A stretch of DNA of 64,000 bases from positions 15,314,001-15,378,000 of the forward strand of contig OZ281495.1 in the NCBI GenBank assembly GCA_965637545.1, read 5' to 3'. The notes beneath the pieces are model-generated. The model was not told the origin of the DNA and searched no databases. It saw only the letters and a list, made by a program, of their open reading frames with translations. The DNA is from Phallusia mammillata (taxonomy: Eukaryota). This document shows, in pieces, positions 1,686-63,799 of this stretch. Both the position numbers and the translations under genes were made by a program. Positions within the stretch are counted from its first letter, which is position 1. Every line of letters starts with the position of its first letter.

Positions 1686-2621
1686 GAATTTGTGGTCCAA
1701 CGCAGTCTGTGTCGACAAATTTGTTTTTTAGTTGTCAGACAAAGTTGTGAAAAAAACTAAACTTATATCAGTTTATCCAGATAATTTTTTGGGGGGCAAT
1801 CGGTTCCGAATTATCCGAGGTTTTTAGCACGTTAATACAGTGTTATTGTAATACAGAAGAGGTGTAATATTTGCCGGAGCCGGAATTTAATTTTATCAGA
1901 TCCGCAGAAGCAGGTGCCGGACCCGGAGTTTTTTTGCTTTCAATATTGTTTTGATAAAACAGAAAAAAAGCTTATGTTGGTGTTTTTTATAAGTTTTGAT
2001 TGGTTTAGTTGCGTTTTGCGGTGATAGTTGTTTATTATCATCAGGATTTAGACTTAGTGTTATTTTGTGACAATATGCCAAAAATTCCGAGTAAAAAAAA
2101 ACAGTTTAGAAATTTGCTGAGTCAGCAATTATTGCCAAAGTAAAAGCCTGTGCTCCGTTGCGCCGTCTTTTGAAAATTGTGTAGTAGCTCCTCTACTTTG
2201 TGTTGGTAGCTGTCTAGCTCATCATCACATGGGTAACATGCAGTTACATACGGTGTTCTAAAACAAAAATATTGCGTGGTTTGCCAGGATCGTGCTTGTG
2301 TTTAGTACCAAATGCTTGTTAGAAATTGCAATACAAGTTCAAAGAAGTGTGAGATAAATTGTAACTCAATAACTGTTGCGTCGTTCCACAGAAAGTGACA
2401 TAGATTTTTCCATGGCATAAGGTTTAATACTTAGTTTACTTACCATTATTTTAACTGAGTTGCCATTTAATTATTTTTTGCAAAAAAAAGAGTTCTATAT
2501 TTCAACATGCGAAATAAAGATGTTTTTAACAAAAACTGATTACACATAGTACTACTTTCACATAATAAAAGCCTAAGCACAACAAAAGGTGGCATTTTTT
2601 TGTCAATTTCAGAACAAAGCC

Positions 2622-3725
2622 ATGCGACTTAACAGGGTTTTACAGTTGATGAAGACTGAAGTAACTTTAAATGGCAAAGAATCATTTTACTCTAGAATAC
2701 TAAAATGTTTTCCTGGAAATATGAGTTTAGTGTTTTCATATGGGTCAGGAGTATTTCCTCAAACTGCGGGTGAATCTCCCACAAGCAATATGTTAGACTT
2801 TGTTTTTGTGGTTGATGATGCTAAAAAGTGGCATAGTGAAAATTTGCAAAGAAATCGAACACATTACTCGGCAATTATGAGAAATGCTGGTGTTGAACGC
2901 ATAACAAATGTAATGCAGAACTATGGTGCCTCAGTATATTACAACACAAACATTCACATGCTGGGAAGAACGTTAAAATACGGTGTTGTTGCTAAAGATT
3001 GTTTGGTAAAAGATCTTACCACATGGGATAAGCTCTATATTGCTGGACGTCTTCATAAACCTGTACATATTGCCCACCATAACTTTGAAAATTCACCAGA
3101 ACTGCTTGCAGGTCTGAAAACAAACCTTATTGGTGCTGTTCTAACTTCACTAATAATTTTACCTGAAACCTTTAGTGAAAGGGAACTTTTTGAAACCATT
3201 ACTGGTTTGTCCTACATGGGGGACTTTCGAATGACATTCGGTGAAGACAAAAAGAAAGTTGCCAAAATTGTTCAGTCTAATTATGAGAGATTTCAACAAC
3301 TGTATTACCCAGTGCTAGAGGGCATCTGTGAGACATCTTTTAGTCAATCACCATCATCACAAAGTTTCATTTACTGGAAACGAAACAGTGGAATCATTGA
3401 CCAAGACAAATCTCCAACAGTTCAACATAATCATTTAAAGCGCCTTCCTATCACTGTACAACTGCAAGTCTGTCGTATATTTGACATTCAAGCCAAACAC
3501 ATTCGTGATGTGGAAGAAATTCTTAAAAGTGTTGCAAGATATCCAGACAGTGCAGATGTTGTGCAACAAGCTGTGACAAATATTGTTCAACGACAAAGCA
3601 AAGGTCAAAGCTTAAAGGGCATTTTAACAGCAGGACCTTGGACATCAATTAAATACAGTGCTAACAAAATTAAGAAAATGGTGGCAAGTATGTCCTTCAA
3701 AAGACCAGTATCCAAAACAATTTAG
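2622..3725 (+). CDS. TAMM41: Mitochondrial phosphatidate cytidylyltransferase TAM41, single coding exon
   Basis: Tam41/Mmp37 motifs FSYGSGVFPQ, MLDFVFVV, VYYNT, LKYGVV, LYIAGRLHKPV, GLSYMGDFRM, QSLKGILTAG. First true ATG is at 2622, preceded by a TTTCAG acceptor. Confidence 0.93.
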   Translation: MRLNRVLQLMKTEVTLNGKESFYSRILKCFPGNMSLVFSYGSGVFPQTAGESPTSNMLDFVFVVDDAKKWHSENLQRNRTHYSAIMRNAGVERITNVMQNYGASVYYNTNIHMLGRTLKYGVVAKDCLVKDLTTWDKLYIAGRLHKPVHIAHHNFENSPELLAGLKTNLIGAVLTSLIILPETFSERELFETITGLSYMGDFRMTFGEDKKKVAKIVQSNYERFQQLYYPVLEGICETSFSQSPSSQSFIYWKRNSGIIDQDKSPTVQHNHLKRLPITVQLQVCRIFDIQAKHIRDVEEILKSVARYPDSADVVQQAVTNIVQRQSKGQSLKGILTAGPWTSIKYSANKIKKMVASMSFKRPVSKTI

Positions 3726-4033
3726 ATTAAAACGTCGCCAATTTTTACGTATTTCTTCGTGTTAGATAAAACTTTTGGTAAAACCCAATACATATGAAGT
3801 ACTTGCAGTGTAGCAGCCATGTCGTATAAAATTTGTGATAAATGGCTATGTATTATTAAACATATCAACAGTTTCATGCTCCACTTATACACAGCAATAC
3901 CTCATACAAATTACTGTTCTGAGCCTGTATAATGTGTGTGCAACACATGAAAAAGTTAAAATTGCCACCATCTGCGCTATGACCATTAAAACTCCAAAAA
4001 TTAAGTGCCAATTTGTTCTTATTATACGGTAAA

Positions 4034-5506
4034 TTAAAGTTTACTTGCTTTATCCATCATGAAAACTTTGTCTAATCCAGAAGCTAGGTGATTTGGAAGG
4101 CACTTCAACGGTCTTTGTGTTTTTGGATCTACAAATACATGTACTGGAAAACCAGTGACACTTGGTTCAGTGTGATAATGCCTTTCCATGTCCTTTAAGA
4201 CATCAACTTTATTTTCAGTAACCAAAAGACCCTGGGAGCCTATTCCCAAGATCAACAAAGGGTCATGGTTATTTGATTCTGCATGCCTTTTTTCTTCCAT
4301 TGCAATATTGTAGTCGATTTTGGGTTCAAAAAATGCTACTTCATAGTGGACACTTGACTTTCCAACCTTCTTTACTCCTAGTCCGGCTAAGATTACTTGA
4401 GGAAATATGAAGGGTTTCCTGATACAAAGTTTTGAAAACTCTTAAGGAAATAAAGTTTGGCGAAAAATATAAAAAACAAAGCCTAAATATCACTCAGGAA
4501 ATATTAACAAAACAATCTGACTTTACATAAACATATACCTACTTGTAAATGCATTGGGTTTGGATCATGTAAGCTAAAGCAGTTGTGTTCACTCTGTCAG
4601 TGCTCAATCCACAATACCTGCACAAAAACTTTTGCTTGTCATTAACAAAATGCAACACAAAGTGTGGGGATAAATATACATATTACAGTTTACAAACTTC
4701 ATTAAGGAACAAACAGGCCAGCTTACTCACACTGGTTTGTCTGATTCTTGTCACCTTATCTACAACATTTTAATTTGGAAGATGGATTTATTACATAAAA
4801 TATGCCTGTGGTTTGTGTCCGAAAAAACATATTTTCACAAGGCTATGGTTTAAAGCTGCAGTATTGCCACAGCATCCTTTTTGCACTGGAAAAGTTTAGC
4901 AGGACCCCACCAATTAAAAATATTGAATAATGACATGATGAATCAAATTATCACAATAATTTTAACAGTCATAAATAAAATAACAATTGGGTTGCAACTG
5001 ATGCCACATAGCCAATATTAAATGAAGTATGGTGATTGTTTTTTCCTGCAGTCATACTGTGCCCGAACTACAGCCATCATGCTCAAAATAAAAAGTGGCT
5101 GTAAAATCTTCTTTTATTAGATGTTAAAGATTACTGTGTATACATTAACAGCATTAATGATATTTTTGTATGTGGAATCCTAGAATATGACATTACCCGT
5201 GAAAAATTAACAATAAATTAATCTATTATATGTACCAAATTAGATACGTGTTAACAACTGTATCACAATAGAAGTGATACTGGGAGTTGTTGACGTGGCC
5301 ATAGTAGTCGTTGTCAGCACATCTTGTTTGGATGGGAAGAAAATACCTGAAACAAAACAAGATACATTAAGATGCTAGATACAAGATACATTCAAAAATA
5401 GATTTGTTACTTACCTGTATTTTGAAAAATTTGACTGCATCCTGATGTCCACAGACAGTTTATTACAATATTTACCCAAATAAAACAGATTTCTAAAAGG
5501 TCTCAT
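4034..5506 (-). CDS. Hotdog-fold acyl-CoA thioesterase (4HBT/YbgC-like), 4 coding exons, C-terminal SKL
   Basis: Exons at about 5415-5506, 5237-5346, 4543-4617 and 4034-4418 splice in frame. Motifs YFLPIQTRCADNDYYGHVNN, AGLGVKKVGKSSVHYEVAFF and VHVFVDPKTQRP. Ends DKASKL*. Confidence 0.85.
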
Positions 5507-39628: not shown

Positions 39629-40047
39629 GTTTAGGCGTTTTTTTTGTATTATGATTTTATATGATGGAAAATAAATCATAAAAGTTGTTATCACTGGATT
39701 TCCAATTGTAACTTATTGTTTTATGAGCGGAAAAGCCATCACCAAATGTGTTGCAAAATATGCGTAACCTGTACGTTTTGCCTGAATGATTCTTACCGTT
39801 ATGCATTTCACTTTTTGATAAATTTTTTGTAATAATTAAACTTACTTGCTGCGTTTTCATAAGAAATCACGCGATTCTCGTATTCTTAAGCAATTCTCTG
39901 TGGGTTGTAATTCCTTGCCCACCATGTTGCTTGTTTGGTGATCTCTATTGGTACATTTGCACCACTTATCAGTTGTAAGTGAAGACGAGCAGCAAGCGCA
40001 GATTTAAGTGGAAGCCTAAAATTGTGCGTATTTTTTTTAATTTGGAC

Positions 40048-40428
40048 CAGAGTTGCAAGCGGGCCCGAAATCTGAGCCCGAACCCGGCCCGAACCCGGCC
40101 CGAACCCGAAAGTATAAGCCCGAAGCCCGGCCCGAACCCGAAACGTTTTTGCAAAGCCCGTTTAGGCCCGAAATGAACAACAAACACAATGAACAGTAGT
40201 AGACAATGGAGTAAACAATACGTTTTAGACTAGGGTGGGCGTTAGGTCAATGCCAGAGACTTGTTACTTAGCTGAGTGATTTTTTTTTTTTTAAATGGCG
40301 GACACGGAACGTAAAGTCAGGCCCGTTTTAAGCCCGTTTTAAGCCCGTTTCCTCACAAATATACCTAAGCCCGAACCCGGCCCGAACCCGAACCCGGCCC
40401 GAAAAGCCCGGCCCGACTTGCAACTCTG
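40048..40428. mobile_element. hAT-type MITE with arrays of CCCGAA/GGCCCG repeats, in an intron of copy A
   Basis: TIR CAGAGTTGCAAG / CTTGCAACTCTG, perfect 8-bp TSD ATTTGGAC. Confidence 0.93.
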
Positions 40429-43009
40429 ATTTGGACTGCAAACGTTTGGTGGTGAGTGTTGCACGTATGTAAATAACTTTTGCAGTGGTTTCAAAATTTG
40501 CAGAAATAACCGTTTTGTTATATTTTTTTTCAAAATTATTGCGTCTGGGCTTTTTTTAACTTTCCTTGAAAAATAAGCGTTAAAAGGCTGAACGGTAAAA
40601 ATCGTGTAATAACTCTACCGGAAATCGGAACTGTAGAAGTCAGTAACGTTTGTCCCAAACACATTTCTCGCTGAGTCGAGGTAAACAGATAAAGATGACA
40701 ATGTCCTTTCGGCAGACAGTTGTGAAAAAATAAGTGGAGATATCTAATAAAAAAATTAGCAATTCATTCTAAATCCAAGAGGAAATGCAACGTATTGAAA
40801 GTAAACCTTATTCGAATAGAAAATAGATGATAAGCGTACTTACCAAATTCCACCCATTGGGTAGAGAATGTTCATTCCAAAATTTGTTTCAACCAAAGCA
40901 AGTCGTTTCATCATTCTTAAATCATTTGGAAACACATTGAGTGCTTCCAGTTTTTCAATCGATGCATCCACAACATCTTCACCACTCGCATCAGGCACCA
41001 AAGTCAAATCAACGGACTGTGCTCTGGAAAACGAAAGATTTTTGAATTATCAAACAAATGTAAATAAAAAGAAACAATTAAAATTACCTAAAATCAAATT
41101 AGAATTATGTATAAAATATCATAAAACGCTATACAAATTAAACAAATATTGTATGTTGTAAATAAATAGAAACAATTAAAATTACCTGGATATTGGTATC
41201 ATCAGTATGTTACTAACAGATAAGAGCAGGACTAGATACAAGTACATTGTCAGTGTTTTATTCTCGTTGTACTCTCCTCTGCTTTTCTTTTGTTTGTACC
41301 AAAGTACGTAAACAGCAACTTTGGATCCTAAAAACATTGCCATGTGACTCAATAATATAAAACCTTTTAAAACAAAAAAATAAAAGCGATTAACGCAAGA
41401 TACAGCTCAGTAAATTTGGATAAGTTTTAAGACACTGTAGTCAGGTAGTGTGTCACTAACATAATGGTTGGAAAACACCGCCGTATAAAATAGAATGTGT
41501 TTTGATTTGAAACCACGAACAACATATTTAAGGCCATATTACCTCCCTCAAGTAAAGCTAACGTTGATTAATATTTACAAAATATAAATTTAGCTTGAGC
41601 CATGTGAACTACCCTGCTCTGTACCGATCTCTGTAGTGAAATCTTGCAGAAGTGTTAGCAAACAGCATTTTGAAGTGGCCCAGGCTAATTGAAGGTCCTA
41701 ACTGACGACCAACTTAAACCAACTATTTTCCAACTATATAGATATTTATATTCAGCAAGTGATAAAAACGATTCGTTGACTTTGCAATGTTTCCTGCATC
41801 AATTTAATCAGGATGCAACGCGACTCTGCTGATTCAAGCCCACGTAGTGATATCATATTATGTGTGATGTAATTGGGTTCGCGCTGATAATGTTGAACGC
41901 TTTGACTGGAGTCGAATTCATATATGCCCCGGCATTGTAAAACAACACTCGGTACATTACTTGCCATTTACAACAGTTCCTCGCTTACTCTATACTGCTG
42001 CTCATTTACATTTGTCTATGAAATCTTTTCTCTAAAACAGGGATCGACAACCTCTGGCCCGCAGCCCCCTCAGGAAAGTGAAAACACCACTTTGCTGGTG
42101 GAAACTCTAGAATGGCATGAAAGCAAGAACGCTGTACCAAGCGTTGTTTAAAGCGTTCTGATCTAGGTTTCACAAAGATTTCATGAAATTAAAGTAGTTG
42201 GCAGTTTCACCGTTAAATATCTGTTTATTTTACACAATAAACAGTAAAGGGATCGAAAATTAACATGAAAAATTAGTACGGCCTGATACGACTTTGCTGA
42301 TTTTGGTTTTAATAAATGATCTACCAGGTAAAGTTATATCAGCAAAATTAATAACACAAGATCGTAAAAGTTGCCTTCTGTCTAATGCCTGGACAAGATC
42401 ACATGAACAGACCAGCACTTTGCTTTTGTAACACACTGAACTTGATAAGTTGTCTGTATTGACGTATTTCCTGTTTGGCTGGTTAAAAAATATACATTTT
42501 TTTATTATTATTATTATAGACGTTGCGTTGCGTGGTGATTACGTTTGGGACCAACGTTAAGTTTGGGGCCAACGTTTCACAATAGCACACAGTCGATTCT
42601 TCATTACGGTATATTTCTATTCGTTGATCATCTTGTAAAGTACAGTATTTTTAACGTCTGTGTTAAAAATAACTTTTAAATAGCATTGAAGACTAACTCA
42701 AAAAGCAACCACGCAAAGCGACTTCCGTAATAAACCATATTCAACTGCATTACGCCTTGAAAAAAATAATATTGTCATGTGATTTATGATTTATTGATTT
42801 ATCGGCCGCTCCTCGAAAGTAAACCTTAATACACATCATGCAACAAACTTACTTCCTACCGTTTGATTTGTAATTAAGATTATGTTAGAAGTTGCCATTA
42901 TTTACAGACCCTATAAAACATTCTTGTATGGCGAAAAGCTATACACAACGCAATAAAAATTAATGGATGCTATAGTCAATAAATTGTTATTGGATCCGTT
43001 TCCTCGCAC

Positions 43010-46000
43010 CTACTTTGTGTATAGCATTGCGAAAACAGAACTAAGCACAAGTGCTGGCGAATAAAACTTGATGTAAGAAGCAGCACTTGGTGTGGTCGTA
43101 GGTGTTGGGGCGGTGTTAACCTATAACACATTTTTAAGTTCAGTAAATAATAAAAAGGATAGCCTATTTATCAACACACGAAAAATCAAAATACACACTA
43201 CATGTGACGTCAGTTACTGTGAAGCACACGCACTGTAAATGACCGACAAAGTAATAAACCAACGCAAAATATGTTGAGTTTATTTTTGTCGAAAACCACA
43301 AGTAAACGACTGAATCAATAAACAAGGTTTATTCACTTACAGTAGCTCTGACAGGACTTCCAGTAGATTGAAAGTCGACTTGAAGAGATTCGTCGCTAGT
43401 CGATTTTAGGGCAACGTACAAAGGTTTGCTGCCAACTTCAGCATCAACTGCTCTACGTGATCTGGATTGTTCTCCGACCAACACCAAGCCCAAATTCAGG
43501 TCATCAGTGTTTATAGTAATAATAGTTGTCCCCTGTTAGCAATATGAGTGGATTAGTATTAATTGCATTTATCAAACACGATCTTAGCAAAACAAAAGCT
43601 CTTGGCGACATTGCTGTTTATTGTTTGAGTTGCAGTTTGCTTGTGGTCAGAGAATGATGAATTACTCACGGGCAAAATTATGATAGAGAAGTCGTACACA
43701 GCCGAGCTGGGATGTGAAACCGTTCCAGAAATATAAACGATGCCTGATCCACTACCGGTGGGAACACGAAATTCAAGCTCGACTGATCCGTTATTGGGGA
43801 GCTGAACACTTGAGTAGTATGTATTTCCTGGTGGCACGATCACTTCAACTGTTGTGTTGTCCTTGAAACAAATCACTGAAAAACAATTTGATGGTCTATT
43901 CCATTCACACCCCTTACCGGTATTTCGGCGGAAGCCATGCAAACACCAGAATTAAGTTGACCTTTAAGTGAACTTAACAATTGACTAAAGACGTTTAGTT
44001 CAAATACAAAAGTCGGAGTGCCAGCAATTTCCTCCAGTTCTGTTCTATCTATTCCACTTCCGATCCCAACAGCAAAAACAATAATTCCTTGATCTCGGGT
44101 CTAAAATTTATGTAAGCCTCGGTTTATCTGTGCTATTTCCCAACAACATGTGTTGTATTTACAACTTCCATCTAATAGACTCAGAATTAGCAACTAATAA
44201 AGACCTCTTCGATAAAAGCTCACCATGTTTGAGGGAGCGACAACATCGTCTCCACTCTGCCCATCAGTAAGAACAACCAGAACTCGAGGAGCTCCTGCTG
44301 AAAGTGGCCTGAGACCGAAAGTCTTATTAAAACCATATTGTACAACTTCAGATATTGCATCTCCAGTGAATGTTCCTCCTGTGTTACAAAAAAAGGTAAC
44401 AAAACGATTGTAGTCAGTTTGCACAAATAAAACCAACCTCCGGGATATGCAGTTGCAAGTACCGTGTTAACAAACACGGTGTTGTTTGTATGCTCGTTGA
44501 AGTGACTGATAAAATTATGACGACTTGAATAAACCGAGAAACCGAAGCGAACAGCGTCAGGTGCAATTGAAAACTCGGATGAAAGATTTGCGACAAACTG
44601 CAATGTTGTTCGAAAATTACTTGGTCCAATGCTGCCCGAACCATCCACCAACAACCAAATGTCAAGTTATGAAACGATGCAACCTAAACAAATAAGTTAC
44701 CGTACATACTCGCGGATAGGTCGCAACGTTTTCCTTAAATATTTTTTTAAATATAGGTGCGACCAATCCGCTCGACATAAGTGCAAATCGCCACCAAGTC
44801 GGAACAAAATTGAAAGTTCTCGGCTATTGCAAGTACCGTATTTTCTGGGTTCGGCTCATTGGGCGGATATAACGTATTTATTCGAGTATAACGCGCAAAA
44901 TTGTGTCCTAATTTTCAATAAAAAATTAGGGATGCGCGTTATAGACGCGAATTGTAGTGGAAATGTGCTATTGCAACTGTGGTTCTATCGAATACGGGTG
45001 CATGCGCTCGTGCACGCACATACCAATGCGAGACAGTTTCATGAGCGCACACGCACATGCGACCGCTCAGCGTGCGTTGGATTTTCCCGCTTTGTTGAGA
45101 AAAAATGGTTTTGCGGTTTCAATGCATTGCAGTTCAATGCTAAAAAAACAACCAATTGCACAGGTTATCTATGCAAAAAAGCTATGGAAAGGGCATTTTA
45201 AATCCCTAGATTTTCAGTGCGACTTATGTGCGAGTCAACTCTAAATTAAACTTTTTTAACACAAAACTAATAGTGCGACCTATACGGTGGCGCGGCCTAT
45301 CGGCGAGTATATACGGTAAGTGTATTGAGTTGAGCATTTCTCCTTTTCCTAATTAGTTTGTTGCAACCAAAAGTCATTTTGGCATAATTACATCACTGTT
45401 GTTTTATAACCGAAAAATGCGAACCTACTTAATGCGTTTTCATAAGAAATCACGCGAGTCTCGAAGTCTTGTGCGTTTCCTTGAAGGTTGTAGTTTGTTG
45501 CCCACCAATTTGCTTGTTGAGCGATTTCCACCGGTACGTTTCCACTGGCATCATTTATCAGTTGCAGGTAGAGACGAGCAGCAAGAGCAGATTTGAGAGG
45601 AACGCTAAAGATTTTGTTGGATTCTTTTTGTGAGAATTAAGATTACTTTACAATTTTAACTTTTAACGTTTTATATTGAAAGAACGGTTTAAAAAATATC
45701 TGAACAATTTCGTTTACGTTTGAGCCGCAATTTTTCATGTTCCAAAATTTCCCACATGTAACCTATGTCAAAATTATGGTAGGACAGGCCTATTATTAAC
45801 GTTGTACCGATTTTATCATAATTCAGCTAAAATGAACAGACTGTTACAGATACGTTCATTACTCGATTAGCCCAGAGGCGTTATGCCAATCTTAGTGGGA
45901 AAAAAAATACAAACATCCACTGTAACATCTTTATTGGCCAACTTAGCGTACTAACAAACTTTCAAGGCTTTTTAAACAATCGTTGCAGTTTATCTCTACA

Positions 46001-46756
46001 TTTCTTGGACCATGGCGTTTGGCGTCAAATTTATGGTGAGATAAAAACAAGCAACAAGTTACCGGAAGTCAGAATTGTTAAAGTTTGTAACGTTTGGTCC
46101 AAAAGCGATTCTCGTTTGATCGAGGTAAGCAGATAAAGAAGATTGGGCACTCGTGGCAGACAGTTGTGAACCAATATTTGAGGTAATCTAAAAACAAGAA
46201 GGATTGCAGGGAAGATCTAAAAACTTTTTGAATTTAATTTTTAACTTCGCCAAGTTAATTTTAACTGGGCAGTGGTTATGAGACTTACTTTCCAAATACC
46301 ACCCATTGTGTTGGTAATGTTCATTCCAAAATTTGTTTCGACTAAAGCAATACGTTTCATCAATCCAAAGTCATTTGGAAACACTTTAAGTGCTTCAAGT
46401 TTTGCAATCGATGCATCCACAACGTCTTCACCACTCGCATCAGGCACCAAAGTCAAATCAACAGACTGTGTGCTGTAAGAAAAGAGATTAATCAAGTAAC
46501 AACACTTACAATGGCAAAGGGCATTTATTTATTTTCAATCTGTTTTTTAGCCATATCATTTAAGGTTCAAAAACTAGCTATATAAAATTTAAAGGCCGTA
46601 TTTCTAAAACTCGTTTTGATTTTATTAATGGAATATTTATGTCCTTCAGCCAATGTTTCGACAAGAAACTTTGTTGAAAATCGAACACGTACGTGATTAC
46701 CTGGCACTTGGAAGTAAGCCGCAAACAACAAAAAGCAAGACAAAATACAAATACAT
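43010..46756 (-). CDS. Array copy B: signal - lysozyme-like - [TAA] - VWA - PPC-like(RSRR) - short stalk - GPI signal; 10 exons, one premature stop
   Basis: Signal MYLYFVLLFVVCGLLPSAS. RIALVETNFG...GGIWK; ALAARLYL...QQANWWATNYN. TCA TAA at 44667-44672 versus TCC AAA in A, C and D. The remaining exons are open to ...PALVLSSVFAMLYTK*. Confidence 0.8.
44700..45316. mobile_element. Tc1/mariner-superfamily (Tc2/pogo-like) MITE in an intron of copy B
   Basis: TA|CCGTACATACTCGCGGATAGGTCGC ... GCGGCCTATCGGCGAGTATATACGG|TA. A second TACCGTATTTT terminus lies internally at about 44834. Confidence 0.85.
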
Positions 46757-55215: not shown

Positions 55216-58200
55216 TTATAACGACAACAGGGTTGTGATCGTCAAAGCGACCAACAGATAAAGATGATAAAACATGCATGGGGAGGCGGCACTAGTTGTT
55301 GTTGACAATGTTTCACTCATAGTTGTTGCCAGATTTGTCGTAACTTCAGTGCTCATCGCCGTAGTTTCAGTGCTGGTCGTCACATTTTCATTGCTCATTG
55401 TCACGGTTTCCATGCTCATCGTTTCAGTTGCGTTTGACGAGGCGTTCATAGATGCAGTTACAACCTAATAATTTTCCATAAATTTCCATTCAGTTTATTA
55501 TTTTAGCATAATAATAGAGTCACTTACAGCAGCCCTGACAGGACTTCCAGTAGATTGAAAGCCGACTTGAAGAGGTTGATCGCTGGTCGATGACAAGGCG
55601 ACGTACAATGGTTTGCTGCCAGATTCATTATCAACCGCTCTGCGTGATCTTGAGAAAAACCCAGCCCAATTCAAGCTGCTGTTTAAATCATCAGAGTTGA
55701 TTGTAATAACAGTTGTTCCCTGTTGGTATAAGATGTAGGTTCTAACTGTATTGATTTTGTGTATCGCCATAAGTTACAACAATATATTTGTAAAAATTTA
55801 ATTGAATGATAAAGCACTTTTTGTGGCTTAGTTTATGTTTTCATAGGTTTTTTATTAGTAGTTTATTATTTAAAACCGTTAAGCAAGGTTGTATTGCTCC
55901 AAATATTAATGTATTTTTTATCAAACGTTTCGGCACATGAATGCGCAATCATTTGAACCTAAATTTCTAATACAAACAAAAGCATGCTGTTATTTACTGT
56001 AATAATGGCCTGTCTAATTATGACAACATGTTTTTCCCCAAAAAGTCATATTTCCAAACCAGCTTTGTTAAATTAGAACTTACAGGTGTTATTACAGCCG
56101 AAAAATCATGCACAGCTGAGCTTGGATTTTGAATAGTTCCGGAAATGTAGACGACCCCTGATCCACTGTCGGGAGTGACATGAAATTCAAGCTCAACTGA
56201 TCCGTTATTTGGCAGCTGAACACTTGAGTAGTATGTATTTTCAGGTGGCACGATCACTTCAACTGTCGTGTTGTCCTTAAAAGTAAGGATTTTAAGTTAG
56301 ATGTACTGAAATTCATATGCCACTAAACTTAGTTTAACATTATATCGTACCGGGATTTCGGCAGATGCCGTGCAAGCATCATTGCTCAGTTCACCTCTCA
56401 GCACAGTTATCAATTGACTGAAGTCATCCAGTTCAAATATTCGGCTTGGAACTCCAGCAATCTCCTCTAATTCATTACGATTGATTCCGCTTCCAATGCC
56501 AACAGCAAAGACGGTTATACCGGCAACTCGCGCCTGCAAGTTTGTAAAAATAATTAAGTGTCGAATTTTTGCGTATATACAAATCGGAGCATTTTGGAGT
56601 ATTGCAAAACTGACGAATACCGTTTTAGAAGGAGATAATACATCGTCTCCGCTTTGTCCATCAGTAAGAACAACCAGAGCGCGAGGAACACCTGCAGAAA
56701 GTGGTCGAAGGCCGAACATTTCATGAAAACCAGTTTGCACAACTTCGTTTATGGCGTTTCCAGTTCTTGTTCCTCCTGTGTTGCAATAAAGGTTACAAAA
56801 TGATCGTTGTCAGTTTGCACAAATATAAACCAACCTCCGGGATATGTAGTTGCAAGGACCGCGTTTTTAAAGGCGGTGTTGTTTGTGTGCTGGTTGAAGT
56901 AACTGATAAAGCAGTGACGACTTGAATAAACTGAGAAACCGAAGCGAACGGCGTCAGGTGCAATGGAAAACTCGGATGAAAGATTTGCGACAAACTGCAA
57001 TGTTGTTTGAAAGTTGTGTGATCCAATACTTCCCGAACCATCAACCAACAACCAAATGTCAAGTTTGGAAACGATGCAACCTTTACAAATTTACAAGCAA
57101 AAAATAAAATTACATATTATAACAGACACGATAACATGTGTTCCGAAACTAACCAGTTGCGTTTTCATGTGCAATCACTCGCTCCTGGAAATCCTGTGCG
57201 TTTCCTGTGAGATTGTAATAGGTATTCCACCAGTTTGCTTGTTGGTCAAGTGGCCCAGGAACACTTGTACCAGCCAACAGTTGAACATAAAGACGAGCAG
57301 CAAAAGCTGACGTAAGCGGGATTCTAAAACATATAACCAGTGCCGGATTAAAGGTCTGCTGGCCTGTAGGCACATTTTATAAGTGGCCCGAAAATCAGGG
57401 TTGCCAACTAAAAAATTAGAATTATCAGTGTTGCCAAATTATTGTCACAAAGATCATTGTTGCAACTATAACACAGGGTACCGTGCAAAAACTTGGTCAC
57501 ATGCCTAACTAAATGACAACTTTGCGCGTTTTCGCGATTGAAAACGCGTTAACTAGTTGTTGGGGGTCAATCTTACGGAGTAGATCGCTTTCTGGCTTTC
57601 AACACAAAAAATAATTATTTTGACAACATGACTAAATTTCTACTGATTTGTGGCCTGGATTCTTGACTGGCCTGTAGGCACGTGCCTACTTTGCCTAATG
57701 GTTAATCCGGCACTGCATATAACCGTAAATTAGACCATGGTCGTGCGTCGTATCCTACCCACTTTTACCTAAAATCGGGGTCGCCTGACAAATCAGTGAT
57801 ATTTGTTCCGAACGCTATGCTTGCTGGTATGAAATATTGACTCAAAGAAAGCAGAGCCGCGGGATCAGACAATTGGGATGAAATATCCGATGTGATCTGA
57901 AACACCAAAACGTTTTTAGTCGGAATACTAAAAAAGGTTGTGTATTTTTTCTCTTTAGCCTTTAGCATCACTATAGTTCATATTGTGTTATGAGACTTAC
58001 TTGCCAAATGCCACCCAATTCGTTGGCAATATCCGTTCCAAAATTCGTTTCGACTAAAGCAATACGTTTCAGCAATCCAAAGTCATTTGGAAACACATTA
58101 AGTGCTTCAAGTTTTGCAATCGATGCATCCACAACATCTTCACCACTCGCATCAGGCACCAAAGTCAAATCAACTGACTGTGTTCTGTAAGAAGTGGTCA

Positions 58201-58355
58201 TAAGTTTGTTTGTTTTTTCAATTTGCCCTTAATGACGTTGAAATTACTTTAGTTTTTACCCATTTTATGCTTAATTTTTTGTGAAACTTACACTTTTACC
58301 TTGTAACTTTAAACAAGTTGTATAGAATAAATGCCATTCCAACTTTGAAAAACAT
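55216..58355 (-). CDS. Array copy C (intact): signal - lysozyme/lytic-transglycosylase-like - VWA - PPC-like(RSRR) - Ser/Thr stalk - GPI signal; 10 exons
   Basis: Signal exon MFFKVGMAFILYNLFKVTR (phase-2 donor). KRIALVETNFG...GGIWQ; AFAARLYVQ...QQANWWNTYYN; MIDAS DGSGS/T/LTDG; FFSRSRRAV; ends SAASPCMFYHLYLLVALTITTLLSL*. No stops found. Confidence 0.88.
57338..57715. mobile_element. hAT-type MITE in an intron of copy C, next to the splice acceptor
   Basis: TIR CAGTGCCGGATTAA / TTAATCCGGCACTG, perfect 8-bp TSD CATATAAC. Confidence 0.93.
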
Positions 58356-58656
58356 TTTTGTCACAAAAAAAGTCTTTCATACGGACAAGAAAACTTTCTC
58401 CAACATCTGTATGGTCAGGGTGAGATACGGAATCGGTTTTATATAGTATCTGTGATGATCCAAGCTATGTACACAAATCAATTCATTGAATAGGTTGGAA
58501 ATCCCGTTTTCAACAAAGGGAACGTTCTTCGCGGAACTTTACAAAATCTGAAAACATTTGCTGTTTGCTTTCCTGGTGCCAGTAACGATAAATACACAGG
58601 TACCATGATAAGGCATACACAGGTACCATGATAAGTTGTGATAAGGCACACCAGTT

Positions 58657-61955: not shown

Positions 61956-63799
61956 TTAGCAAAATGCCAACAAGGTTGTGAACGTCATGATAAATAACAG
62001 ATAAAGATTGTACAAGATACTTCGGGAGGCGGCACATGTTGTAGTTGATAATGTTTCACTCAAAGTTGTCAGCTTCGTCGTGGTTTCAGTGCTGTTATTC
62101 GCCACAGTTACATTTAAGAGAGAGTTCGTAGATGCAGTTGCAACCTTAAAATGTTTTAGTTAAGTTTGTACAATTGTTTAGCCTAAAAGCCGTTAACCAA
62201 ATCACTTACAACAGCCCTGACAGGACTTCCAGTGGATTGAAATCCGACTTCAAGAGGTTGGTTGCTGGTCGATGCCAAGGCGACGTACAATGGTTTGCTG
62301 CCAACTTCAGCATCAACTTCTCTGCGTGATCTTGAGAAAAACCCAGCCAAAATCAACCTGCTGTTTAAATCATCGGAATTGATTGTGATAACAACAGTTG
62401 TTCCCTGGTGGTAAAATATAAGAGTTAAACCTACTTAATCTAGCATATATTTCATCAAACAAGACATCTGTTATTTCTGCAAACGTTTTGTGCATAAATT
62501 GTCATTGTACTGTCTGTGTTTTAAACTATGTATCTGATTAAAACTTACAGATGTTATTACAACCGAGAAATCATGCACAGCTGAGCTTGGATTTTGAATA
62601 GTTCCGGAAATATAGACGATCCCTGATCCACTGCCGGGAGTGACATGAAATTCAAGCTCGACTGATCCGTTATTGGGCAGCTGAATAGTTGAGTAGTATG
62701 TATTTCCAGGTGGCACGCTCACTTCAACTGTTGTGTTGTCCTAAAAAGCAAGGATTTTATAAGTTCTGTCATTTAAGCCACTAAACTTAGTTTAACATTA
62801 TATCGTACCGGGATTTCGGCAGAGGCCGTGCAAGCATCATTGCTCAGTTCACCTCTCAGCACAGTTATCAATTGACTAAAGTCGTCCAACTCAAATATTC
62901 GGCTTGGAACTCCGGCAATCTCCTCTAATTCATTATGATCGATTCCGCTTCCAATCCCAACAGCAAAGACAGTAATTTCTTCCCCTCGCGCCTGAAAATT
63001 TGTATAAAATGTTTTCGTATCAACCTTTGCGCGTTGGTCGTGTTGGATCGTGTTGCACAAACTGGACGTGTTGCTGTTGCAGTAATGTTCTGCAGCAAAC
63101 CCTACCATTTCAGATGGAGCTATAACATCGTCTGAGCTCTGTCCATCAGTAAGAACAACCAGAGCGCGAGGAACGCCTGCAGAAAGTGGCCTGAGACCGA
63201 AAGTTTCATTAAAACCAGTTTGCACAAGTTCGTTTATGGCATTTCCAGTGAACGTCCCTCCTGCGTTGTAATAAAGGTCACAGAACGTCCATTGTTAGTA
63301 TATGCACAATACAACCAACCAGAGAAATATGCAGTTGCAAGGACCGCGTTGAAAAAGGCGGTGTTGTTTGTGTGCTCGTTGAAGTGACTGATAAAATTAT
63401 GGCCACTTGAATAAACCGAAAAACCAAAGCGAACAGCGTCAGGTGCAATTAAGAACTGGGATGAAAGATTTGCGACAAACTGCAATGTTGTTTGAAAATT
63501 GTCTGATCCAATACTGCCCGAACTATCCACCAACAGCCAAATGTCAAGTTTGGAAACGATGCAACCTTTATAAATCCTAGTAAATTAAAAATTACAAATT
63601 AAACTAATCCGAGCGATTCCGAAACTAACCTGTTGCATTTTCATATGCAATCACACGCTCCTGGAAACCCTGTGCGTTTCCTGTGAGATTATAATAAGTA
63701 TTCCACCAGTTTGCTTGTTGGTCAAGTGACGCAGGAACACTTGTACCAGCTAACAATTGAACATAAAGACGAGCAGCCAAAGCTGACGTAAGCGGGATC
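61956..63799 (-). CDS. Array copy D (5' part beyond window): end of lysozyme-like domain - VWA - PPC-like(RSRR) - stalk - GPI signal
   Basis: IPLTSALAARLYVQ...QQANWWNTYYN; DSSGS MIDAS; LTDGQS; FFSRSRREV; ends CAASRSILYNLYLLFIMTFTTLLAFC*. All visible exons are open. Confidence 0.85.

Follow-up and report, generated by a model that had tools for sequence, protein, structure and literature searches.

How does a tunicate gene come to carry a domain whose short motifs recall the cell-wall hydrolases of bacteria and phages, and what might that domain do? The question is raised by a 64-kb stretch of Phallusia mammillata DNA (GCA_965637545.1, contig OZ281495.1, 15,314,001–15,378,000), here called the window, to which all coordinates refer. 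The window is AT-rich and eukaryotic in character (G+C 35–41%), and on its minus strand, at 57152–58184, lie three coding exons (exons 2–4) of an intron-containing gene, with canonical AG/GT borders. An original prediction, made from the letters alone, had noticed lysozyme-like motifs in these exons and suggested a peptidoglycan- or chitin-active domain, resembling phage and bacterial proteins and possibly of ancient horizontal origin. We confirm that observation and find the interpretation as a whole largely supported: the exons encode a domain that very probably has a lysozyme-like fold and is in all likelihood homologous to the phage family phrog_3108.

An intron-split domain shared by an animal family

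The gene, copy A, is one of four tandem minus-strand paralogs (A, B, C and D) located by tblastn of the three exon peptides against the window. Exon 2 (58001–58184) encodes the first third of the lysozyme-like domain, SVDLTLVPDASGEDVV...KRIALVETNFG...GGIWQ, and is translated as ...KRIALVETNFGTDIANELGGIWQ; the codon of the candidate catalytic Glu lies at 58049–58051 and GGIWQ is encoded by 58001–58015, so that 11 residues separate the Glu of KRIALVETNFG from the first Gly of GGIWQ. Exon 3 (57769–57896; ITSDISSQLS...IAFGTNITDL...) encodes the variable middle helices, is 50–53% identical among the paralogs and matches the I..FgI.W region of the family consensus described below. Exon 4 (57154–57323) encodes the last third of the domain, IPLTSAFAARLY...QANWWNTYYNLTGNAQDF; its translation, IPLTSAFAARLYVQLLAGTSVPGPLDQQANWWNTYYNLTGNAQDF..., contains the motif IPLTSAFAARLY followed by QANWWNTYYNLTG. 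Introns thus split the domain, as had been proposed, and tblastn and translations show the motifs listed in the original prediction (VETNFG, GGIW, PLxSAxAAR(L/H) and QA(N/T)WW..YN) in every visible copy.

Directly after the lysozyme-like domain come the VWA exons (56300–57080, minus strand; exon 5 starts at 57080). Two open segments match Pfam PF00092 above threshold (54.2 bits, E 2.7e-14; 62.5 bits, E 7.7e-17), and the metal-ion-dependent adhesion site (MIDAS) motif, DxSxS, is intact as DGSGSIG. No chitin-binding domain was seen in a Pfam scan of the open segments of the copy A gene, and single window exons had no Pfam match at E ≤ 10.

We built an exon-2 profile (A1) from three window copies and searched it against 1.84 billion protein cluster representatives, of which 300 matched at E ≤ 1e-3 and 35 at E ≤ 1e-10. 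Local iteration gave a domain of ∼165 residues and an alignment (A3) of 86 full-length examples, whose hidden Markov model (HMM) recognizes exon 2 of copy A with 83 bits (E 1e-27) and exon 4 with 45.9 bits. Three positions of A3 are invariant, one Asp and one Gly close to the beginning and the Gln in QA..W (86/86); the Arg and Ala preceding the Glu, the residues of GGIW (77–85 of 86) and the Pro of PL.SA (85 of 86) are nearly so. Given this conservation and the 300 cluster matches, the motifs are far beyond chance.

The family occurs in three forms: a signal peptide and the domain alone in ∼200 residues, two or three domains in tandem, and proteins of ∼500–750 residues in which the domain precedes a VWA domain. 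The closest full-length protein, P0008 of the ascidian Clavelina lepadiformis, has the same architecture as the window gene and is 62% identical to copy A in exon 2 and 47% in exon 4. Word-indexed homologue searches returned few named proteins; named members come from Ciona intestinalis, Clavelina, the leech Helobdella robusta and the mites Halotydeus destructor and Medioppia subpectinata, and a mollusc cluster in the ESM Atlas combines the domain with VWA and CBM_14 chitin-binding domains. In full-length homologues Pfam recognized the VWA part only, NCBIfam had no match for the N-terminal domain, and our literature searches found no description of the animal family. Judged by these searches, the family is new and unannotated, within a known superfamily. 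One 1211-residue match to the exon-2 profile, P0012, was set aside as a repeat protein carrying 'KRVDLVETNLTTDI', not a homologue.

Predicted fold

We modelled the fold by AF2 (AlphaFold2) with the A3 alignment on a homologue, the Clavelina domain (P0008:20–190). The model has a mean predicted local distance difference test (pLDDT) score of 91.7 and a predicted template modelling (pTM) score of 0.89. Helices make up most of it, and the one ending in the Glu is immediately followed by a short hairpin at GGIW.

A structure search had been named in the original prediction as one check on its lysozyme-like reading. In a representative-wide search with VIA-align, 45 of the top 50 rows belonged to the lysozyme superfamily, with GH23 (SLT, PF01464) lytic transglycosylases the best solved-structure matches (Z 7.1–8.9). 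Escherichia coli MltE headed the list (Z 8.9; root-mean-square deviation 3.3 Å over 125 residues), followed by MltC and the phi6 lysin (both Z 7.8), phiKZ gp144 and a Ralstonia GH23 chitinase (both Z 7.6), MltF (Z 7.5) and Slt70 (Z 7.1); salmon g-type lysozyme was matched at Z 5.6. To rank 45 the list was almost exclusively of this superfamily, including destabilase and silkworm c-type lysozyme, with α-lactalbumin at rank 47, and GH19 chitinases were also among the matches. A Foldseek search of the PDB returned nothing at E ≤ 0.001; MltE, the GH23 chitinase, the muramidase Tse3, Slt and GH19 chitinases headed its list, at E ∼1. The case for the fold, which we regard as a strong one, is made by the uniformity of the structural list and by motifs that fall in register, not by the Z values alone.

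Homology with the phage family phrog_3108

The nearest non-animal neighbours of the domain in the ESM Atlas, by shape and language-model features, were Uroviricota clusters of hypothetical proteins of 157–191 residues with no Pfam family. Their template modelling (TM) scores of 0.68–0.77 and feature score of 0.90 put them ahead of bacterial SLT clusters, at TM 0.5–0.56. In BFVD the top match was an uncultured Caudovirales protein (TM 0.77, E 8e-5); next came several phage proteins ∼150 residues long (TM 0.64–0.73).

Sequence comparison led to the same phage proteins. When the 86 members were scanned against PHROG, one family recurred, phrog_3108 ('unknown function', 160 positions), matched by 53 of the 86 with a best E of 3.6e-22. 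The matches cover profile positions 9–155 of 160, and they place the animal family within phrog_3108. E-values fell from 3.2e-19 for P0042 through 4.2e-10 for P0036 and 1.6e-5 for a mite protein to 0.017 for the Clavelina domain (P0008), and neither the Ciona protein nor the single window exons had a match in the PHROG library. The window gene would thus belong to phrog_3108 by transitivity through the animal family.

P0042, the member closest to phage, opened the link in tblastn searches: P0042:47–217 run against phages matched 113 records (best 39.7% identity, E 5e-19), whereas the more diverged window exon 2 and Clavelina domain found nothing significant. Among the records were 92 Vibrio phages and ten N15-like Klebsiella phages including phiKO2 (Gp54), together with Pseudomonas phage PSA28, Salmonella phage PMBT28, Shewanella phage 1/44 and Komagataeibacter phages. 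The family HMM scores the phage proteins at 19–83 bits. In a targeted test in the other direction, an HMM of seven phage proteins only matched exon 4 of copy A with 24.6 bits (E 1e-9), and the same exon gave a weak direct tblastn match on the phrog_3108 gene of Klebsiella phage Kpn74.

Homology extends over the whole ∼160-residue profile (phiKO2 Gp54, PSA28 QVJ13210 and Vibrio phage 1.055.O NVP1055O_31 are examples). Shared motifs are A.(V/A)E(T/S)..G, G.G(I/L)(W/T)Q(V/I)D, F(G)ID(W/L), P(L)...(A)RL.Y and IP.....(Q/R)A.YWK.YYNT..GT..(D)(Y/F), and the predicted fold is the same (TM 0.64–0.77). In phiKO2 Gp54 they read AAAETLLG...GTGLTQVD...FGVDL...PLMAMLFCRLRY...IPATREARAAYWKKYYNTSKGTPQDY, or in shorter form AETLLG...GLTQVD...CRLRY...AAYWKKYYNTSKGT. 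The pattern to which the original prediction had likened the exons, ES...GIxQ...A.ARL.Y...YW..YYN, is that of phrog_3108. Its 'YYN..G' element is nearly invariant (Y/W-N-T/R) in the phage relatives and only partly kept in animals (Tyr in 56 of 86), and the resemblance it had claimed to uncharacterized proteins holds for phages; on the bacterial side it is weaker, the only relatives seen being ordinary SLT enzymes at the level of fold and one mixed Atlas cluster.

The two groups also differ. The phage proteins stand alone, are cytoplasmic and have no signal peptide, introns or VWA domain, and their genes lie next to those for holin and spanin or for the baseplate; the animal domain appears to be secreted and is usually fused to VWA. 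It also has an additional conserved N-terminal segment, VDLTL..GA.G.DVV.A..KI, which hmmalign left unaligned in six of the seven phage rows.

Two sequences at the animal–phage border deserve description. In P0042, on a eukaryotic 1.28-Mb contig (ENA ERZ25069326), the whole domain is one uninterrupted open reading frame (ORF) and a VWA ORF follows 28 nt later, as read in a locus extract (4001–5426). In LR756504.1, a 636-kb uncultured phage, is the sequence most similar to the animal family, the one that is 39.7% identical to P0042; tblastn reports three matching places in this phage, of which one was read (extract 2342–2950).

Gene context of phrog_3108 in phages

In phage PSA28 the phrog_3108 gene, which precedes the large terminase region, is directly followed by a LydA-type holin gene (PF16083, 1e-11; phrog_785) and an Rz-like spanin gene (phrog_89, 1.7e-8). 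The order in phiKO2, downstream of a putative late promoter, is Gp53 (101 residues, three transmembrane-like segments), Gp54 (phrog_3108), Gp55 (a hydrophobic N-terminal stretch and one transmembrane-like segment, residues 50–68) and an overlapping Gp56. No other lysozyme or endolysin is annotated in positions 1–50,531 of the 51.6-kb phiKO2 record, the part viewed, and phiKO2 is listed with a two-component spanin in a spanin survey (PMC6139136). Together Gp53–Gp56 (extract 2558–3980; RefSeq gives all four no names other than 'GpNN') resemble a complete lysis cassette, in which the phrog_3108 protein is accompanied by a holin-like protein, Gp53, and by a pair, Gp55 and Gp56, that overlap and look like a spanin. 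In the record of one oyster-associated phage the phrog_3108 homologue is annotated as endolysin. The phage proteins have no signal sequence or transmembrane segment, as expected of holin-dependent endolysins. From context and fold, we consider it likely that phrog_3108 is a muralytic family of endolysin type. A Pantoea phage MED16 paper that we followed up turned out to treat an ordinary endolysin.

Origin of the animal family

The original prediction had also called for a phylogeny with viral relatives. In a maximum-likelihood tree of 86 animal and seven phage domains, unrooted and with thin phage sampling, the animal and phage groups fell on opposite sides of one branch (Shimodaira–Hasegawa approximate likelihood ratio test, SH-aLRT, 92), a split in keeping with one origin for all the animal sequences; the huge-phage sequence was the phage closest to animals. 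We consider transfer from phage to animal the more economical direction because both the superfamily and the setting in lysis cassettes belong to bacteria or viruses, whereas the signal peptide, introns and VWA fusion are additions of the animal genes. Its occurrence in tunicates, annelids, molluscs and mites means that the event is old or that there were several. Most likely there was one old acquisition of a phage lysin, with the signal peptide, introns and VWA fusion following later, and the domain is probably the product of an ancient domestication.

The candidate catalytic Glu and the link to SLT enzymes

Lysozyme-superfamily enzymes of the SLT type and the animal domain appear to share, in the same order, a helix-end Glu followed by Ser or Thr, a G-x-(M/W)-Q hairpin 12–16 residues on, a long helix and a late (A/Y)YN. 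In the structural aligned ranges MltE E64, Slt70 E478 and Pseudomonas aeruginosa Slt E503 fall within ∼2 residues of the family Glu, which, as the original prediction would need, is kept in 76 of the 86 animal members and in all seven phage proteins aligned to the family model. This Glu may lie in a cleft of the domain.

Sequence comparison with SLT enzymes is less decisive. SLT (PF01464) was the only Pfam family matched by more than one member, in four of 86, below threshold and over the stretch with the Glu and GGIW. We also aligned the catalytic domains of E. coli K-12 Slt, MltC, MltD, MltE and MltF as a reference set for hhalign. In local mode the family aligned to these five domains with E 8.7e-4 and probability 23%, and with the seven phage rows added, E was 1.7e-4 and probability 49% over 109 columns. 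The register, statistically weak, was the same in both runs, pairing VE(T/S) with ES, GGIWQ with GLMQ, PLYSALAARLYL with the following helix and W..YN with AYNAG; it agrees with the structure-derived register and with the motif order that had been predicted. Runs against the single Slt70 sequence, or in global mode, gave meaningless alignments and were discarded.

Differences from SLT enzymes are also clear: there is no significant sequence match, TM scores are only ∼0.4–0.56, Trp takes the place of the Met of GLMQ and QA..W..Y(N) that of AYNAG, and SLT enzymes are bacterial and periplasmic, whereas the phrog_3108-type family is found in animals and phages.

What the domain may do

Overall, the explanation that we favour, with reasonable confidence, is that copy A encodes a lysozyme-like domain derived from a phage lysin, set in a secreted VWA protein and cleaving peptidoglycan in defence or digestion. 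On the pattern of SLT enzymes, the only general acid would be the Glu that closes helix 2 at its C terminus (VETNFG), while the GGIWQ hairpin and the PL.SA.AARLY and QA..WW..YN helices would line the glycan groove. The domain would then cleave the N-acetylmuramic acid–N-acetylglucosamine (MurNAc–GlcNAc) backbone of bacterial peptidoglycan, in antibacterial defence or digestion, and the VWA domain would tether or oligomerize the protein. Taken by itself, catalytic activity of the animal domain on peptidoglycan seems to us evenly balanced. We advance more tentatively, as somewhat short of probable, the wider proposal of a bilaterian-wide class of animal lysozyme-like proteins that arose by a single ancient capture of a phrog_3108 endolysin, was fused early to VWA and still acts as a Glu-dependent, peptidoglycan-cleaving effector.

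A number of observations weigh against this explanation. The fold was predicted on a 47–64% identical homologue in place of the window's own joined protein, and Z values of 7–9 are middling, those below 8 being able, according to the tool, to reflect a common helical arrangement. The sequence link to SLT stays under 50% hhalign probability, the best PF01464 score was 13.3 bits against a cut-off of 21.3 with no match for the window exons, and a PDB sequence search with the family profile returned only a spurious HD-domain match (E 1.2). The Glu is replaced in 10 of the 86 animal members, some of which can therefore not be enzymes of the SLT type. The subgroup to which the window gene belongs, tunicate and VWA-fused, is the most diverged from phage. 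Two of the four window copies (B and C) have premature stops, and public 'RNA?' contigs over 56200–58450 cover only the repeat in intron 3, not the exons. Finally, a lysis cassette is seen around the gene in PSA28 and phiKO2 and not in Vibrio and Shewanella phages, where the phrog_3108 gene comes after one for the baseplate and an ORF of 70 residues and has no neighbours with transmembrane segments; endolysin is thus not the sole possible role, and that of a tail-associated lysin is possible there.

Some of these points would suit a domain that has kept the lysozyme-like fold for non-catalytic recognition of glycans (peptidoglycan or chitin), presenting microbes or matrix to the VWA domain, an alternative that we consider unlikely. 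α-Lactalbumin and other inactive lysozyme-like proteins have retained the fold and lost the activity. The absence of the Glu from some members is in line with such a role, the joining of the domain to VWA, an adhesion module, and in molluscs also to CBM_14 suits binding or a matrix role, and we identified no second acidic residue typical of hydrolytic g-type lysozymes. Lytic transglycosylases, however, need just one Glu; the Glu and the GGIW hairpin are present in all readable window copies and in 88% of the family, and the most conserved positions coincide with SLT catalytic motifs. Purifying selection among the paralogs (dN/dS 0.17–0.5; 0.28 for copies A and B pooled over exons 2 and 4) is compatible with both catalysis and recognition.

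A still less probable alternative is an active glycanase directed at chitin or another GlcNAc polymer, remodelling gut chitin–mucus, tunic or shell matrix. Peptidoglycan is the substrate expected from the nearest non-animal relatives, which lie in lysis cassettes of phages of Gram-negative hosts, and the window gene has no visible chitin-binding domain; this has to be set against the GH23 and GH19 chitinases among the structural matches and against the structurally nearest animal cluster, in which the domain is joined to VWA and CBM_14. That the likeness to lysozyme is a chance helical arrangement with short motifs in an unrelated animal domain, the phage similarity reflecting eukaryote-to-phage transfer or convergence, is very improbable: the solved lysozyme-fold matches do all lie below Z 9, Foldseek E-values are ∼1 and hhalign probabilities are below 50%, but one superfamily fills the structural list, the register agrees among structure ranges, sub-threshold Pfam matches and hhalign, and homology to a phage family encoded beside holins and spanins is statistically solid.

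Relation to known lysozymes

Goose-type (GH23) lysozyme is likewise a secreted animal protein, of the same superfamily and glycoside hydrolase clan, and exists in single-domain forms of ∼185 residues. Its structural match to the animal family is nevertheless weak, below those of many bacterial and phage enzymes, there is no sequence match, and we did not identify in the animal family the accessory Asp residues that g-type lysozymes have. We conclude that the family differs from goose-type lysozyme.

Domestication of phage or bacterial wall hydrolases by animals has precedents in the phage-type lysozymes of bivalves (PMC5303276) and in ascidian rusticalin, which has a phage A500-like L-Ala-D-Glu peptidase domain (PMC6339383). 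As in the family described here, a phage lysin domain has been provided with a signal peptide, introns and fusion to an animal module, and the carriers include ascidians and molluscs. The enzymes differ: rusticalin has an MD/L-Ala-D-Glu peptidase domain, the bivalve enzyme is a phage-type lysozyme, apparently of another catalytic family, and the animal family has a GH23-like predicted fold. The present family is also spread much more widely (tunicates, annelid, molluscs and mites).

Animal lysozymes, textbook enzymes of immunity and digestion, are usually counted as c, g and i types together with a few lineage-restricted captures from phages or bacteria. The domain may represent an unrecognized animal class of cell-wall-cleaving immune or digestive protein. 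If so, it would be a further, widely distributed lysozyme type beyond c, g and i that current domain libraries have missed, and hundreds of animal proteins labelled 'VWFA domain-containing', 'collagen-like' or 'hypothetical' would acquire a testable function. So would phrog_3108, providing an endolysin candidate for N15-like and other phages in which none is annotated, such as phiKO2. The family would also be a clean case of phage lysin domestication, with signal peptide, introns, adhesion-domain fusion, tandem duplication and stand-alone truncated copies.

Layout of copy A and the other window copies

A scripted scan for an ATG, a hydrophobic stretch and a donor in matching phase gave a candidate exon 1 for copy A at 58300–58355 (minus strand), with an 18-residue hydrophobic start (putative signal peptide), a phase-2 GT donor and a 115-nt intron to exon 2. 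Analogous candidates, clearer and more hydrophobic, lie upstream of copies B (46701–46756) and C (41186–41247), and with such exons ahead of three copies the product is probably secreted. The open segments downstream of the VWA exons include a beta-rich region; at 55219–55773 there are an RSRR site (FFSRSRRAVDNES), a stretch rich in Ser and Thr and, at the C terminus, a hydrophobic tail, which suggests proprotein-convertase cleavage and a mucin-like stalk anchored in the membrane or by glycosylphosphatidylinositol (GPI). The protein, probably secreted and tethered to the surface, would thus consist of a signal peptide, the ∼170-residue N-terminal domain, VWA, the beta-rich region that contains RSRR, a stalk rich in Ser and Thr, and the hydrophobic tail.

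Copy B extends from 46.5 to 43.3 kb, with exons 2–4 (45433–46471, minus strand) at 46471–46289, 46187–46065 and 45603–45433, respectively 87, 50 and 63% identical to copy A by tblastn. Its motifs are ALVETNFG, GGIWK, PLKSALAARLY and QANWWATNYNLQG. Five codons into its first VWA exon, at 44667–44669, it has TAA in place of the AAA of copy A; its product would then be only a signal peptide and the lysozyme-like domain, like the ∼200-residue stand-alone members, or alternatively copy B may be a pseudogene. Divergence between copies A and B is uneven, with dS of 0.13 in exon 2 (58001–58183 versus 46289–46471) and 1.4 in exon 4 (57155–57322 versus 45433–45603), which, on small counts, suggests that exon 2 has undergone gene conversion or that the copies have a mosaic history.

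Copy C occupies 41.0–38.0 kb; tblastn placed its exons 2–4 (39850–41019, minus strand) at 41019–40843, 40731–40636 and 40014–39850, with ALVETNFG, GGIW, PLKSALAARLH and QATWWARNYN. Exon 4 (39850–40014) has an in-frame stop inside the domain and AARLH in place of AARLY, and copy C is probably a pseudogene. Copy D (63.8–61.6 kb) is represented by exon 4 (63631–63798, minus strand), 91% identical to that of copy A, and by downstream exons colinear with copy A; its exons 2 and 3 lie past the window end.

Intron 3 of copy A holds an element at 57332–57721 that resembles a miniature inverted-repeat transposable element (MITE), bounded by 20-nt terminal inverted repeats (57332–57351 and 57702–57721) and containing the internal direct repeat GGCCTGTAGGCAC. 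It is found at high depth and in internal-deletion variants in the 'RNA?' contigs, and for this reason we take it to be a dispersed repeat family.

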